Part shown: piece after piece, positions 54,873 to 64,000 of the stretch
Layout: each line of letters starts with the position of its first letter
Numbering within the stretch: position 1 is the first letter of the stretch
From: Perna viridis
Lineage: Eukaryota
DNA length: 64,000 bases
Direction: 5' to 3'
NCBI GenBank assembly: GCA_037379345.1
Contig: CM074513.1
Span: forward strand, 40,420,885-40,484,884
Notes under the pieces: generated by a model
What the model was told of the DNA's origin: nothing
Seen by the model: the letters and a program-made list of their open reading frames with translations, nothing else
Database searches by the model: none
Translations under genes and position numbers: made by a program

Positions 54873-57800
54873 ATTTTTTATACAAAATTAAGCTACATAT
54901 CAAAAATACTAAATAGAGAGACTTAAGTTAGATGTTGTCTATGAAAATGTAATATCACGTTTGTGACACATGTCATAATATACCCTAGGGTAGCCAGGAA
55001 TTACTTTTATTTTTAGTACATTTTGTGAGTCCAAGTTACCAAAGCGCTAGAATTCTCTGCCATTTTTGTGAAACTTACTCTTTCCCCGTGGAATTTGAAA
55101 AGTATTTAATTATATTTTAAGCATCCATCTTTGTCAGCCCCCACCTCTTTTGTAAACATTGGGACTTGGACATTTAACAGTTAGGGGTTTCTCAGTTCGT
55201 ACGGCATTTTCATGCATTTAGGGGTTAGGCATACTTAACAGAAGTTTCAGGATGCCCATAGACCTTGTGGAACTGCCACACGCACTTTAGTTTCAGAGAA
55301 AACATGTACGATTGATATTTGGAATCTGTTGCGTTTACTAGGTACGGTAAGTATTTTTATTAAATTACTGATTCAAGAAAACTTCGTTTTAAAGACATTG
55401 TGAAGACATTTTCAAACAGCTTCACTTTTATCAATACATATAATAACAACAAATTTTGAAAATGACATTTTTTACTATTCTTAAAAACTGTTACCTCCCT
55501 CTAAAAATTATATATTTTTTTTAATAATTTGGGCTATAGTTTTGTTTATATAGCTTCATTTACATCCTATAAGTCTATTTCAATCCTCCTCCTCTCATTA
55601 ATGGGTCAAAACAGAATGATAAACGTATGAAATTATCAACTACTCCCATGAAATTCTATTGCATAAAGTCACATAACATTAATTATGACGATACCTTAGG
55701 CTAGAGACCACTAAATTAAATGCATTAAATATTTGCAAAGAACTTCTTCTGACTTTTCAAATAAAATAAATCAATCATGACTTGCTTTTTAACAATATTA
55801 ATAAAGAGATAGCCTTTAAAAGTAATCATTTTCTGAAATATTGGTCTATTTAAAAAAAAATTATGCCTGACATGCCTCCCCCATTTTCTTGATCACATGT
55901 CAAAATCCCTATATCTTTAAATTTTCACAAAAGGTGATATATTTGGCTTTAAATTTGTAAATACAGTGTTTTCACATTAAAACATGACCAGTAAAGGGCA
56001 CCTAAATTAAAAAAAAGTAGTCAAAAATGGATTTTCCATGTTGCCATCAGGAAATGCTTATAGGTCTCAGTATCGTATTAATTTTCCCATAGACGTCTAT
56101 AGTGAAGTGCATATTTTTAGGAATTTTTAAAAAATATATAAATTGATTCAATAAAACTTTCGCTTATGTAGCATTTCTAAAGACATGTGAAAAAATAATT
56201 TTCCGCAAAGAAAATAGGGTGAGTCCACGAAGATCGGACAGAAAAGTAGTCTCGAACTATAAATAGCCATTTTCCCTACTTTCACTTTCGTTTTGCAGTT
56301 ACCAAACCAACCTTTTCAGTGGAACATTTTTATGATATCATGTTAGATATTCTTTTAAAAAAGTTCTTCATCTTACAGTGTGATGTTTGCTCTATTTTAT
56401 AAGTCATTGTTCATATCTTTTGACAAAATATTAGTTTGTAGAGAGTCAAAAAGAAAATGCACTATATTTTTATAGCGTCCATGTTTTGACGTACACCTGC
56501 TCAGGGATATGCAATACGATACTGGTACCTATATGTCCTTAACCGCAGTAATGAAGGTGAGTTTTTCCTCATTTCTAACCAAATTTTTGCTCAAATCTAC
56601 ACAAAACTTGATTTCAAGTGCTGATTACCACCATATTGAGGTAAATATAGCCCTCAAAGTTTAATATTTGATATTTTTACTAAATTTTGTACACTTTTTA
56701 CAAGATAGGACATAAAAATCAGCCAAGAAGACCAATTTTCCATAATTTGGACCTATAACTTAAAAAATGCATATTTTGAAGGATTTTTGTAGTGTATTCC
56801 TCTCATGGCAAAGTTTACAAGATCTTCAAGTAGTTTAAAGCTATTCCAAGAAACTTTTCATTTAGCCATGGCTTCTGCTTAAGGCTAGAAACCACTAATT
56901 CCACTTCCCATAGGCTTCTATGCTAATTTCACAAAATTCAATGGCTTCTCTGGACTTTACCTTAACTTTAACATGCAGAAGACTATATATCAGCATGATT
57001 CTACATATGTCAGCTCACAATCCTCAGAATGGCATGTGGGGTTAGCAGACTTGCAGTGCAGTACTGGTCACCGGAAGTGAAGGGTCTATAAATAACATGG
57101 GAAATCCCAGTGTTTTCACAAGATAGGAGTATATTTAGAAACCATTGTGGAGATTAGCTTCACATCACAAGAAGCAAAATGCACCTATAAAATGTACAGA
57201 AACGTTTTCCTTTCAGAAACTGTTTAAATTTTTTAAATAAGATGAGAACTTTTTTCACAGCACTATGAGGAACAGGGGTAATTTCTGCGTAGGACTATTT
57301 TTGCGTACGTTCCAAATGCTCATTGGTTGAATTGGTAGTCTGTAACCTTTATTCTCTTGAACATCAGTTGAAAATGTAAAATAAAACCAAATAAACATTT
57401 GAATGTAAAGAAGCAAAGCATAAATATGAAAAAGTACCATTTTAATATACAAAATGTATGCCTGTTTGTGAGTGTATAACATGAGAGATGAGACAAGTTT
57501 TGAAAGATGTCATGTTTTTGTATAGTCATCTTATTTTCAGAATCTACTTTCTATTTAATGAAATATTCTTATTCTCATGTATAGAATGCTTATATGTAAA
57601 AATAGACAACAATCTTCCAACAATTATACTATGGGTTAAAATACCTGTTACAAGGTATATTGAATTATTCATATTTTAGAAACAAAGCAATTACGTCAGA
57701 TCACTGTTAATACTTGTTTCTATGAAAATAAAGTAAACTCATATATATATATATAAATTGCATTATTTGATAAAGATACGTTTATTGTACAAATCAGGCC

Positions 57801-57959
57801 TCCAGCCCACGGTACGAATATGAATTCACAATATAATATCATGCCAACTGCAGATATCATCATAAATTATCATCATCAACAATTTTGAAAACATTAATAA
57901 CAATAGTTAGATCAAAAGTTCACATTAATGAACAAGAACACATTTACAAGTACACCTTT

Positions 57960-58440
57960 CATTTCATTACAAAACAATTAAAATGACAATACCTCTTCTC
58001 TCACATGTTTCCTTTTGGATGTAAATAGCAGTATTTTTCAAGATAACATGATCTTCAGTTTTAAAAAGACTAATCAATTTGTCCATACTTGGATTACTGT
58101 GACACCATATTGGTAAAACAATTTCTTCTAATGTCTGACAATATTGGATAAACAAGCATAAAATAAAAATCCACAACTGACATAATCTATCTTTGCGTAA
58201 TATATTTTCATGTCTACCTTGTTCAATAGCAAGCTTATGATTGGAACATAAATTTCAATTCTAAGATTAAAAACAGTTTTTGAGTATTTTTATTTATACA
58301 TTTTGATCCTTAAACTTGGTATAAAAAGAATATTTTTGTGAGTTAGAAATATGTTCCCACCAGTTCTGTCCATTTATATCCCTTAGTCTTTGTTTAAACA
58401 TACAAATAAATAATGACTCATCTCCAACAACTTGTACAGA
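57960..58440 (-). mobile_element. Decayed LINE 3' fragment (RTE-X-like C-terminal region)
   Basis: Translates to SNHKLAIEQGRHENILRKDRLCQL..F.F.L, the S.H.L.IE.GR...R.C zinc-finger region of APE-type non-LTR ORF2. Confidence 0.6.
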
Positions 58441-59100
58441 GACAGAAGTGGAATTGAGCAGCTACTCAACAGTCATGATATTTTAAGCTTTCAAGAAACA
58501 TTCCAAAAAAAAAAAAAGAAAATGAGTTTATGCATGTAAATATTTTTTGTGATTTTGAGTGCTTCGAATGTTTTCGTAATGGTAATAACTTTAACTATAA
58601 TAAAGCTTCTGGTGGTGTACTAGTACTTGTGAGAAAGCATATTGTTAAAAACTGAAAGTTGTACAAACACTAAAACATTAAATTGCATTATCAATACAGC
58701 GAAATCTGTTTAAAGCGAACTTGTACAGTCCAAAAGGCATTGACTCTGGTGTGAAGGGACATGTTGCTTTCAGTTTATAGAGAGTTCGGTTTAGACAGGT
58801 TACCTTGTATCGAGCATTAGTTGTTAGTATGGTCAGCAGCCTCCCACATATAATATTATATCAGGATATCTATTCATAAAGCGCATAATTTTTGCTAATG
58901 TTTGTTTTTCTTGCCATGAAATTATTTCAATACTGATCAATACAGAATGTGGGAAGCTCCAATGGAAACCTTGATAAGTTCACGTCCTGTGCAATAAAAT
59001 GGAGTACGAAAATAATCGTCGAATTCAATATTGTATCCTAAGCAATTACATGCAGCGAAACTCGAACAGAACTTTGAACATAGTGTTGGACCTACCGCAT

Positions 59101-61740
59101 CTGGTTTTATTAGTTTTTTGGTTCGATAATCCTCTAACAGTATGTATGTGTAAATTGCTGTAGTGTCCGTGACGTTCCCTTCATCGTCAAAGTCCCTATC
59201 ATATATTAAGTTATAGTAGACTGGAAATCCTGGTACCGTTGAATTTACTTTGGCAGTGAATGTTCCTTCGTTGAAAGTATGTGGAATTTTTTCCCAACAA
59301 GAATTGGCATCCTAGATTACCTTTTTTTTTATAATATTTTGAAATATTTAATAACAGCCCCTTCAATGAGCATTTTGACATTTTCTGTTAGATCTTCTAT
59401 ACTAAGCAACTTTCTTTTACAGATGCATTAAATATTGTCTTGTCCTGGACATATTACTTCAGCACATTTTGTCTAAACCTTAACTGTGCAATGAATGCCT
59501 TCCTTTCTCGGATATTTTGGTTAGGAACCTTAGTATGTCAACTGCCATACTTGAACACCTCCATTTAAATTTCCCCCTTAATTCTCTACCTTGTTTCCTT
59601 GCATCTGTCAGTAATTTATCTCTATTTTCTTAGGGTAAACTATCTAACCATTCATGTGTTTGCTGAATGAAAATGTTATAAATGATTCATTTGTTGATAT
59701 TGAAGTATTAGATCAAAATCCGACCATGAAATCGAGCATCCGAAGTTCTGGTAGCTTGTTGCGTGGTATTACTGATAAAGTTTCAGCAGTTAGCTGTGGT
59801 GATGCTACATAAAACAGACCTCCGGGTAATTGATCCTTCATTGCTACTTTAAGAAGTTTATAAAAAGAAGCAAACACAGCAAGAGTGTCTATCTGAACAT
59901 TTTGCACTTTCTATGAGTTAAATTCTCATCAAATGGAAATACTCCACAATTTATAAAGGAATTAGCATCTTTGTTATTTTCCTCCAAGAAGTCTAGAAGC
60001 ATTTCATAATAAGCATTCATTTCTAAGACATGTTTATCAGTTTTTTTTCAATGAGGCACCACAATGGCCCAGTCATAATTTTTTATATCAACCCCAGCAC
60101 TTTACATTCGGCCATTACAGGGTTTGATCTGCACCATGCACATTTTACAAGAAGTCTATCACATGATTTCGATTGTAAAAAGCGATTTCACCCATAAAAA
60201 GTGTTGAAATTTTAACAATGTTAAACTTGTTTCCTCTGAAAGAAATAAAGTTTTTTTTTTATTTTTCTCAAAACAATATGAATTAAAATAAGAAAAAACA
60301 AATAGATTTCTCGTCAAGTCCTGTGGCAAAACTTTTTATGGTCGTCATCGTGAACTCGTGAATCGTTACGGTGAAAACTGATTTGTTCGACGTGCATAGT
60401 TTTCTTTTCCTCTTTTGTCTACCTCGGACTTGACTTTTTATGAGCAACTCGGCAGGTGTTTCTCGAAAAGCAAAAGATGCTTATCCTACCAGTGCACTTG
60501 GTTAATGCTCACAGTTTTTAGTTGAGTCCGAGTTGCTCATTTACTTTTGTTACTTTGTATAAATTATTTTAGTTACTTTATGTTCTTTGTTGTGTTTTTC
60601 TGGTTTCATTTTTATGTTCATTTACAACATCATCCTTTTTATGTAGGACTTCAAATTATTTAAGTACAGGTGTTGTGCACTCTGCAAAGTTAACAAGAAG
60701 GTGTAAACCACAAAATACATTATTCACTGTAGAACAGCCATTTTTTATGCATCCGACAGATCATTCCACCCATCAATAACTTACGGCATCATTTGTTTAT
60801 GGTAATCAATTAATAATTATGTAAAGGCAATATTGGTATTCGACCAGTCCGACATGAAGTCTCTAATATTGCATATTATATCATACACATGTGACATTTC
60901 ATTGTTTTCTAAACTTCCATTACATAATTCAGATAATCTATTAAAATCTCCTTTAAAGTATCTAAAGTTGTTAAAAATGCTTTATTGTGCATTTCCCTTA
61001 AACTTTGTATGTTTATGCTCAGCACTAATAAAGTAGCTATTGTATGTCTTTCCAAACTTCCGTTTTTCATCATAATGTAATGTAGTTTTTTTATTTTCTT
61101 TCTTTCAAACAATGTCCAACCTAAATATAACTTACTTACGATCTTTTCTGTCACTATATTATCAATTGTTCTTTATGTCGGTATTTGCTACAAACTTTTA
61201 CCAGCTAGTTTCAAACTTTCATTGATAACAGATGTTATATGTTCAGTTGCTACATTTTTACCAGATATTTTCATGACTACTTGTCTAAATTCCAGTGTAA
61301 TTGCACGTAACTTTTCGTCCAGTATATTTATTTCTTTATCGTCTTGAATTAAAAGAATGGAGATAATGACTTATTTCCAAAGAGTAATTTAGGTTTGTTT
61401 AAAGGTTACTTACTAATTCTGTATCTTCATTAAACTGTTATGATGTGTCACTGTACAAACTCTGAATTTCCCAAGTTCACTGTTTAACTTGTAAATGTTA
61501 TCTATTTCACTTTTATTGATTTTGTATGTCTGTTAAATCCTTATTTACTTCCTTAGCACATGATTTATATTTCATTACACAGGATGACAATCTTCTGTTT
61601 TGAGTTTTTAATTTCTTACAACTATATCTTAACATTTTAATTTCATTCTTTTACTGTTGTACCTTATATTTCAGATTTTCCACTAAATCTTTGTTTTCTA
61701 TTTTAACTTAATTGTCGTGGCTTTTTGCAAGAAATTATTT
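59101..61740 (-). pseudogene. Decayed DDE transposase (CxxH-containing, hAT/P/Kolobok/MULE-type fold) with C-terminal Spin/Ssty-like domain
   Basis: Ordered, frameshifted motifs: TLHYDE.RKFG (about 61075), NIRDFMSD (about 60860), NNVFCGLHLLVNFAE (about 60710), ECKVLGLI..MTGPLW (about 60090), DQLPGG..NKLPE..FGMLD (about 59830-59735), AQLRFRQNVL, then LVGKK..H.F..YYNLIYD..IYTYILLEDY. Confidence 0.7.
60133..60594 (+). repeat. About 460-bp segment duplicated at 61743-62227 (ends in a HINE-like repeat)
   Basis: Near-identical apart from small indels. Interrupts the transposase relic. Confidence 0.9.
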
Positions 61741-61742
61741 GT

Positions 61743-62227
61743 ACCATGCACATTTTACAAAAAGTCTATCACATGATTTCGATTGTAAAAAGCGATTTCA
61801 CCCATAAAAAAGGTGTTGAAATTTTAACAATGTTAAACTTGTTTCCTCTGAAAGAAAGAAAGAAAGTTTTTTTTTATTTTTCTCAAAACAATATGAATTA
61901 AAATAAGAAAAAACAAATAGATTTCTCGTCAAGTCCTGTGGCAAAACTTTTTATGGTCGTCATCGTGAACTCGTGAATCGTTACGGTGTATGCATCTGCA
62001 TCATGAAAACTGATTTGTTCGACGTGCCATAGTTTTCGTTCCCTCTTTTGTCTACCTCGGACTTGACTTTTTATGAGCAACTCGGCAGGTGTTTCTAGAA
62101 AAGCAGAAGATGCTTATCCTACCAGTGCACCTGGTCCATGCTCACAGTTTTTAGTGGAGTCCGAGTTGCTCATTTACTTTTGTTACTTTGTATAAATTAT
62201 TTTAGTTACTTTATGTTCTTTGTTGTG
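61743..62227 (+). repeat. Second copy of the 460-485-bp duplicated segment
   Basis: ACCATGCACATTTTAC...GTTCTTTGTTGTG. Contains the 13-bp IR ATGAGCAACTCGG / CCGAGTTGCTCAT. Confidence 0.9.
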
Positions 62228-63836
62228 AAATTTCATAGAATACTAACTTATTAAATGTGTGTAGTATTTAATAATGTCATTGTATTTAGAGTACATAATA
62301 AGACTTCAATTCTCATTAAATATCCTCATACACACAACAATATGTGTATCAAAAATAATGCACATGTTTAATGTTGTCGTTCTAGGACCATGCTACCCAG
62401 GGAGTTTATATCGTAGAGGGACACAAATTGCTTACATATGCCCTTTATATATAAAAGCAGATACCAAATTTGAGATAAATCTGTCTAGCAGGAACCAAGA
62501 AAATTGTTAGCAGATAATCGTCACCGTCACGATCAAACCAAACCGGAACTTGTTCAGGAAGGGAAATAACTCTGTATACACAAAAAAGGAGGGTTATTAT
62601 AAAAATTAATTTGGATATGAATACAACCATTTTGTTATATTTATTTAATATAATTATTTAAAAAATATATTAAACTTAAATACATTTTTGTGGCTGAACA
62701 ACGTCACCTTGTTTTTTTTTGGAACGAATTAACTTTTTCAAACCCATGTTTGTACCTCAAATATTACATTAAAATCCTGAAAATGATAATATACATTATC
62801 AAGAATATTCATATAAATACTATCAAAACCAATCGGAACCTTTCAAGACTTAACAAGTTAAAAAGTAGGCTGTGATATGAGGTCAAACAAAGAGTTTATT
62901 CTTACGCATATCCGGGAACAGTTATTTAGGGTAATTTGGAGTTATCTCCTATTTGCCGTTCATACTTTCACATTCTTGGCGTTCATGGAAATACCGGAAG
63001 TTTACATTATATCTCAGTTTTGGCAGATTTTTGTGTACAAAAGATTATTATCGAGTCTCCCTTAGACCGGTTGGCCTTCTAGAATTTATATAGGTTTTCA
63101 TTTCATTCATATTTAAGCGCGCTTTAACTTCAATCTACAGAATTATTTTTATGCGTTAGTGTTCGTGTACATTCCATTTAAATGATGTTATACTATTCAG
63201 GAATAGTCAATGACTCATTCCTGTTTTTAGTTTTTGTGCCGGGAAATTTGAATTATAAGTCTGTATTTTTATTATCAGTGGTATTTTGGTCGCCCGGCAA
63301 GTCGATAAAATTATTAGCCAAAATTAGGGGCTGCCGGCCGGGTAAGTTTTTGCCAGCAATTCCTGGACCTGTATAAGGCGGGAAGCATTCCAAGATGGAA
63401 TATCCCTTTCACCAGAGAAAATAATGGTAGATATTTACTTCCGTTCTGACAACATCAAGTTTTATTTAAAGATAATTTTGTAGACAATCAGACCTTTTAA
63501 ATAGCTTAAAGTCCAAACTATTTGTGTAATTGAATGACAATGCGATATCCCACCACACTGACCAAAGTCAAATGGTACGATTTCACATACTGGACAGAGG
63601 CAACTTTTATATAATCGAACCTTTAATGTGATGGAAAACATGTATATACGTTAGTTAAATGTTTTAAGAGTTAACAAGTAGTTACAGTTATAGTAAAGAA
63701 GTAACGGTTTTCCGAAAAGTAAATTGGAAGAATCGCCAGACAGAGATATAATTTTCTGACGAAACCAAGAAGACCATGAAGTGGTAGAACAAAATGATTA
63801 TGAATTCAAAAAAATACCAGTTTTATGTATTTCGAT

Positions 63837-63880
63837 ATGCTGTACACGTGTTTCAAGGAATAACCTCTCATCAGCAGCAT
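63837..63880 (-). ncRNA. Minimal type I hammerhead ribozyme
   Basis: Minus strand reads ATGCTG CTGATGA GAGG TTATT CCTT GAAAC ACGT GTA^CAGCAT. Perfect 6-bp stem I, intact CUGAUGA and GAAA boxes, 4-bp stem II, short stem III with palindromic ACGU loop, GUA cleavage triplet. Confidence 0.85.
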
Positions 63881-64000
63881 TAAATCAAATATGTAGGAAT
63901 ATCGTAATCAAAATATTAGTGATATGCATGAAGTACTTTGGGTCAAGACTTTCTCGTTGAAAATGTTAGCAAAATTGACTACAGGAAACAATCACTTATC

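Follow-up and report, generated by a model that had tools for sequence, protein, structure and literature searches.

Can a DNA transposase carry a spindlin-type chromatin reader within one and the same protein? The question is raised by a degenerate coding sequence on the minus strand of the stretch of Perna viridis DNA analysed here (64,000 nucleotides of contig CM074513.1, hereafter the window), for which a sequence-only reading had proposed the relic of a DDE transposase fused to a Spin/Ssty Tudor-like domain. Our analysis supports that interpretation: what lies in the window is very probably a copy, dead, rearranged and lacking its 5' part, of a cut-and-paste DNA transposon whose hAT-like transposase is joined to a spindlin-type domain. 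All eight amino acid strings behind the proposal are present on the minus strand where it had placed them (TLHYDE at 61083, FMSD at 60858, FCGLH at 60715, DQLPGG at 59835, NKLPE at 59760, LVGKK at 59301, HTFNEG at 59281 and IYTYILLEDY at 59155), as is the single slip within the Spin-like string, which lies in the A-run at 59292-59287 and leaves LVGKK in one frame and IPHTF in the next with a one-base overlap. Of the longer string NKLPE..FGMLD the first part stands, but reaching the second takes two small slips, the uninterrupted frame reading NKLPELRMLDF. The proposed limits, 59101-61740, were nearly right; the coding remains occupy 61680-59090, and a duplicated fragment at 62227-61719 falls outside them. 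The observation itself is confirmed.

No long open reading frame (ORF) crosses 62100-58800 on the minus strand. The longest stop-free piece, 124 amino acids at 59311-58940, contains the latter half of the Spin-like string; the domain's first strand (MPILVGKK) is read in the neighbouring frame. Taken by itself the relic gives little away. Ten stop-free pieces of it yielded nothing meaningful in Pfam at an expectation value (E) of 10 or below, the 124-residue frame matched no PDB sequence with phmmer and gave no lead in the ESM Atlas, and a whole-genome scan with the Spin/Ssty model PF02513 did not match the window, because the domain is split by the frame change. These negatives are what would favour treating the Spin-like string as a chance resemblance, or as part of a separate neighbouring gene or insertion. 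The identity of the domain in the window derives from its relatives, and they make such an explanation extremely improbable.

Compared with 1.84 billion protein representatives (HMMER/phmmer), the 124-residue frame gave 36 matches, the best at E 1.8e-21 and 68% identity and all of them covering residues 7 to about 75. Six of the matched proteins (P0011, P0033, P0003, P0012, P0036 and P0025) extend upstream with MKEQLPGG, VIPHNKIPERVFGMLDF, NKT.EWL.SLP, YYGLWQ and Q.RFRQ.V, in the order that these motifs keep in the window from 59835 to 59101. At the Mytilus galloprovincialis locus of P0011 (L019), three abutting ORFs are jointly collinear with window positions 61352-59039. In tblastn comparisons the whole of 61680-59090 is collinear with proteins of about 1000 residues from Mytilus and other bivalves (E down to 4e-61); P0046 (828 residues) maps to 61680-59549 in two parts (E 3e-49 and 4e-61), and with P0054 and P0050 the match extends as far as about 59040-59090. 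The linker between core and domain is likewise collinear in the window. Judged by sequence, this resemblance is far beyond chance. The named source organisms are Mytilus galloprovincialis, M. coruscus, M. trossulus, Mercenaria mercenaria and Sinanodonta woodiana, and public records label the family members solely as 'hypothetical' or 'uncharacterized protein'.

That the two parts belong to one gene, as had been proposed, is evident from intact members. A profile search recovered full-length proteins in which core and Spin domain share a single ORF: P0054 (1065 residues), P0055 (1036), P0056 (1010), P0057 (1090) and P0060 (980), the 1065-residue member of the P0054 90% cluster occurring in M. 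galloprovincialis. Their ORF of about 1000 residues opens with a helical region and a long coiled coil, continues with the DDE core and closes with one Spin/Ssty domain at the C-terminus. A second search, started from a distant branch, added 111 further relatives, several of which match PF02513. Across the 55 aligned family members, PF02513 is found at E <= 1e-3 in 17 and no other Pfam domain recurs. When the 26 relatives of at least 900 residues were scanned with a hidden Markov model (HMM) of the transposon's own domain, 18 proved to have one C-terminal Spin-like domain and no more; of the remaining eight, six finish in a Spin-like stretch that is incomplete or divergent. Since most full-length members carry one C-terminal copy, the domain is a constant module of the family and no accident of one copy. 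The joint occurrence of core and domain in one ORF in at least 18 full-length proteins, together with the E value to relatives and the collinear linker, refutes the chance or neighbouring-gene explanation.

The assignment to the spindlin type is carried by intact relatives. PF02513, whose gathering cut-off is 25 bits, is exceeded by P0057 (36.8 bits), P0025 (35), P0055 (30.4), P0008 (30), P0012 (29), P0011 (28.8) and P0054 (26.5). A profile of the C-terminal family domain in turn matches spindlin-1, spindlin-3 and spindlin-4 chains at E 3e-11, with repeat 2 scoring best (34.5 bits), repeat 1 at 10-14 bits and repeat 3 giving no match. In spindlin-1 the repeat-2 pocket is formed by His139, Phe141, Trp151, Tyr170, Tyr177, Tyr179 and Asp184 (PMC8213585). 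In the HMM alignment all seven pair with identical residues of the family consensus, as H.F, W, (V)Y(D), Y.Y and (E)D(Y). Across the family alignment these columns vary little or not at all, apart from that of Trp151, where W, F and Y all occur; in the window copy the seven residues are H, F, F, Y, Y, Y, D. The family also shares with spindlins the LLDDYxxGDLxI tail. It differs from them in that an acidic stretch of about 10-13 residues is inserted ahead of the YxY strand, and in arrangement: spindlins pack three tandem repeats as one globular unit, whereas the transposon protein has one, placed after a transposase of about 900 residues. One confident Spin domain is present per full-length member, extra 15-residue stretches in P0057, P0097 and P0209 scoring E 4.9 or worse.

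In a six-frame translation of the 723-Mb genome, nothing scored above the PF02513 cut-off; the best hit, of 21 bits at C2:53905992-53906114, contains two stops. Exon splitting may conceal a host spindlin gene from such a scan.

The enzyme that precedes the domain is visible in its predicted structure. Core proteins P0046, P0053, P0044 and P0037 matched no Pfam family at E <= 10, and phmmer of the core against PDB found no transposase. A first AlphaFold model, from 17 sequences, had a predicted local distance difference test score (pLDDT) of 64, and Foldseek found nothing with it. The model used here, made from a 55-sequence alignment for a trimmed core of 561 residues translated from locus L040, reached a pLDDT of 93.4 and a predicted template modelling score of 0.87. 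Its topology, strand-strand-strand-helix-strand-helix-strand followed by a long helical domain, is that of an RNase H fold. Foldseek gave 12 matches at E <= 0.001, all to Hermes among the matches listed (about 1e-5). VIA-align placed model residues 61-523 on Hermes 135-609 with Z 18.2 and a root-mean-square deviation of 3.3 Å over 332-345 residues, and the next scores were those of ISCth4 (10.8), the P element (8.6) and integrases (about 8-9.5). The upstream motifs, which the sequence-only reading had assigned to an RNase H-fold transposase, are borne out by this model.

In 55 relatives the columns of model residues D103, D174, C220 and H223 show no or hardly any variation, and that of the catalytic glutamate (E486) is E in 41 of the 42 sequences that cover it. 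By simple offset, not residue-level superposition, D103, D174 and E486 fall at about Hermes positions 177, 248 and 572. This agrees with the Hermes catalytic triad of D180, D248 and E572. In the window the first aspartate is encoded at 61071-61069 (TLHYDE), the second at 60849-60847 (FMSD), the C-x2-H pair at 60712-60701 (FCGLH) and the glutamate at 59748-59746 (NKLPE), the last within the same part of the relic as DQLPGG.

Comparison with Hermes and other hAT structures (2bw3, 4d1q, 6dwz, 8sjd) reveals an RNase H-like core in common, the D-D-E residues, a large all-helical insertion between the second aspartate and the glutamate, a C-x2-H after the second aspartate, and a glutamate in (S/P)E(R)xF near the C-terminal end of the catalytic domain. 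By its modelled fold, the transposase is Hermes-like and distantly related to the hAT transposases, a relationship invisible to Pfam. Unlike hAT proteins, the family matches none of the hAT Pfam models, including that of the hAT C-terminal dimerisation domain (none recurs among the 55), and has a Spin/Ssty domain added at its C-terminus. A BED finger was sought without success: no zinc-finger Pfam match was found in full-length P0054, P0055 and P0057, and the N-terminal 90 residues, which are helical and lead into the long coiled coil, contain no Cys/His pattern. The small ORFs that lie upstream in L040 and L042 match nothing in Pfam and show no conservation.

Evidence for mobility comes chiefly from a sister subfamily in the same genome, here termed subfamily B (loci L043-L047 and L055-L063). 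It is represented by five copies of 94-98% identity on four chromosomes (C4, C6, C7 and C15), each about 7.6 kb when complete, as in the example at C7:27104479-27112118. The left boundary, defined from four copies with the 5'-truncated C6 copy left out, reads TAGAGATGCCA (CAGAGAAGCCA in one copy). The right end, ...TGGACTCTCTA, has the reverse complement TAGAGAGTCCA; the inverted ends are of a TAGAGA type. The copies are flanked by 7-bp target site duplications, two perfect (TTCAAGG and CTTCAGT) and one with a single mismatch ((T/A)ACCAGG). The short terminal inverted repeats of hAT elements begin YARNG and their target site duplications are typically 8 bp. The ends of subfamily B start in the YARNG manner, and YAGAG is the start shared with hAT, but the duplication is 7 bp, not 8. 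For the Spin-bearing branch, element L041 has 15-nt imperfect inverted repeats starting with TAG, 7.4 kb apart and flanked by the 7-bp sequence CTGGTGA. Because of the inverted ends and duplications of subfamily B, with the candidate ends of L041 in addition, the family is seen to behave as a cut-and-paste transposon, its ends hAT-like and its duplications of 7 bp. The sequence-only reading had looked to intact copies with both domains in one ORF between inverted repeats and target duplications; the single ORF was found, and firm ends were found only for subfamily B.

The transposase of subfamily B ends in a different small domain (VGQNVAVAYMDTWYPGQV...), for which matches are weak only: a MORC2 chromo-like model at E 0.004 and Agenet at E 0.26. 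The ESM Atlas returned unnamed clusters only for this C-terminal end.

Three side observations concern subfamily B. About 730 bp of its 3' non-coding region (L023:3376-4104) occur alone at at least 15 other places in the genome with 93-96% identity, either as a short non-autonomous derivative or as another repeat that already lay within the element from which all five copies descend. The C6 copy (L043/L055, C6:1656694-1661531) has the same LINE-like frame (CEGNLTFDECSKVLSRMQNGKSP...) on both flanks. Tandem units of 54 nt run a few kb upstream of it.

The mobility data bear directly on another account of the locus, in which the family would be a host gene, domesticated from a transposase and equipped with a chromatin reader, and the window would hold a pseudogene of it. 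Such a gene might look much as the family does in public records, where intact members from Mytilus, Mercenaria and Sinanodonta are entered as 'uncharacterized protein LOC...' or 'hypothetical protein'. The window lineage, of which the genome yielded no further copy in DNA searches, is single-copy as a host gene could be, and a domesticated nuclease could also retain its catalytic triad. Against this, the same genome holds about a dozen distant paralogs of the window lineage, diverged paralogs and broken copies being numerous both within one genome and within Mytilus; the ORFs lack introns; and the database clusters are large and fragmentary (P0046 has 120 members). Subfamily B likewise speaks against it, since its five near-identical copies lie on different chromosomes and have both inverted ends and target duplications. 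We consider domestication quite improbable.

The reading of the window as a dead transposon copy with a hAT-like transposase and a spindlin-type domain is built on demonstrated homology, single-ORF architecture, fold, conserved catalytic and pocket residues, and the ends and duplications of the sister subfamily. Several points weigh against it. On its own the window copy has no match in Pfam or PDB; its lineage is single-copy in the genome and its own element ends were not found. At the level of sequence, the core has no match to any named transposase family, and membership in hAT proper is tentative, because the target duplication is 7 bp and no BED finger was found. Firm ends and duplications come only from subfamily B, with its different C-terminal domain, and the ends of L041 are a candidate, the chance of such a match being estimated at about 0.01 before correction for four loci and two duplication lengths. 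As for a reader function, it is predicted from the conserved pocket residues.

What the domain might do for the transposon is a separate matter. We propose, tentatively, that the C-terminal domain would bind a methylated histone tail, H3K4me3-like (histone H3 trimethylated at lysine 4), in the way that repeat 2 of spindlin-1 does. Once bound, the domain would hold the transposase to chromatin that bears the mark and so influence where the element lands, as chromodomains do for chromoviral integrases. The proposal draws on the conserved pocket and on the analogy with those integrases, and we would stop just short of calling it probable. An alternative keeps the transposon as described and assigns the Spin/Ssty-like domain a role other than reading a methyl mark, such as binding a host protein (compare spindlin-SPINDOC), binding nucleic acid, or assembling the complex. 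The single repeat would fit such a role, spindlins having three packed repeats, of which repeats 1 and 2 match the same domain; so would the variation among W, F and Y at the Trp151 position within the family, and the unrelated domain of subfamily B, which suggests that a specific mark may not be essential. Against it, the pocket of spindlin-1 repeat 2 is kept even though family members are otherwise 30-45% identical, and the C-terminal domain is retained in nearly all full-length members. A non-reading role is nonetheless a possibility to be taken seriously, if on the whole a doubtful one. It contests the mechanistic step and accepts the identity of the element, so the likelihoods given to these separate claims need not add up.

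The copy in the window is without function, and its value is as a pointer to the family. Its parts are collected in Table 1. Its 5' part is lost, the remains beginning near residue 156 of the protein. In the tblastn comparison, at least 21 stops lie inside the high-scoring segment pairs and about 10 frame changes occur; with a repeat insertion and a partial duplication besides, the label 'relic' was well chosen. A unit of 468 bp is present twice, at 60127-60594 and 61737-62227, with 93-100% identity and about 1,610-1,630 bases from start to start. It consists of the 261-bp dispersed repeat (60334-60594) and the next 207 bp of transposase coding sequence, and its duplication joins residue ~617 directly onto residue ~156 of the main copy. 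Within the duplicated coding fragment, repeats D2-D5 are 89-100% identical to 60127-60395. First-look candidates for the dispersed repeat in the genome, at about 85% identity, are all confined to the 261-bp part, which has no transfer RNA and no Rfam match; Rfam at gathering thresholds found no family anywhere in window positions 56000-64000. The two 468-bp direct repeats were considered as ends resembling long terminal repeats or as independent insertions, and this was rejected. Only 261 of the 468 bp are dispersed and the rest is transposase coding sequence, which makes the arrangement a local partial duplication; it is far more recent than the relic.

Table 1. Parts of the transposon relic in the window (positions within the window)
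Feature	Start	End	Strand	Evidence
Duplicated copy of the dispersed repeat (partner 60334-60594)	61990	62227	-	Direct repeat 60395-60594 / 62028-62227, 96% identity; 468-bp unit 93% identical
Duplicated fragment of the transposase insertion domain (FRGN..NVHG..NNFLQKAT)	61719	61989	-	tblastn, P0046 residues 509-617 at 62071-61719
End of coiled coil and RNase H-like core	60605	61680	-	tblastn, P0046 residues 156-519, E 3e-49; also P0054
Dispersed repeat inserted in coding sequence, between transposase residues ~519 and ~546	60334	60594	.	More than 6,500 genome candidates
All-helical insertion domain and C-terminal part of catalytic domain	59543	60336	-	tblastn, P0046 residues 546-825, E 4e-61
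Linker from core to putative reader domain (RKAFIAQLRFRQNVLK, SIEDLTENVKMLIEGAV)	59317	59542	-	Collinear with P0003, P0011 and P0050
Single Spin/Ssty (spindlin Tudor-like) domain, frame change in A-run 59292-59287	59099	59316	-	phmmer, E 1.8e-21 to relatives

The principle of a transposon with a chromatin reader is already published. Fusions described so far include a hAT element with Chromo in a sponge and PHD in cnidarian elements (bioRxiv 10.1101/2021.11.30.470311), and the chromodomain of chromoviral Ty3/gypsy integrases is cited within that source as directing integration. The present family would resemble both in joining a mobile-element recombinase to a C-terminal domain of histone-mark-reader type (royal-family or other), here predicted from sequence; the reader type is Spin/Ssty. 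Spindlins are not mentioned in the text or the examined supplements of that source (bioRxiv 10.1101/2021.11.30.470311). In the literature searched (Repbase and Dfam lay outside the search) we found no description of a transposase that carries a spindlin-type reader.

A broader picture, which we offer as speculation and think unlikely on present grounds, is of an undescribed, deep-branching hAT-like clade of marine-invertebrate transposons with 7-bp target duplications, no BED finger and an N-terminal coiled coil. A single spindlin-type methyl-lysine reader, ancestral as the C-terminal module, would steer integration in this clade to promoter chromatin marked by H3K4me3, and sister lineages would have swapped in other small beta-barrel domains. 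That the transposon and the spindlin repeats of hosts share a capture event, with a direction that could be worked out, is a further possibility.

DNA transposases with built-in histone-mark readers are rare, and here a spindlin-type domain with the complete H3K4me3 pocket signature sits on a Hermes-like transposase that goes wholly unrecognised in current family libraries. A natural fusion of reader and transposase would be a ready-made model for chromatin-directed integration and is, hence, of practical interest. Naming the family would improve the annotation of repeats in bivalves. The family would also allow the choice of targets by chromatin state to be put to the test, and would add a data point on the spread of the Spin/Ssty domain.

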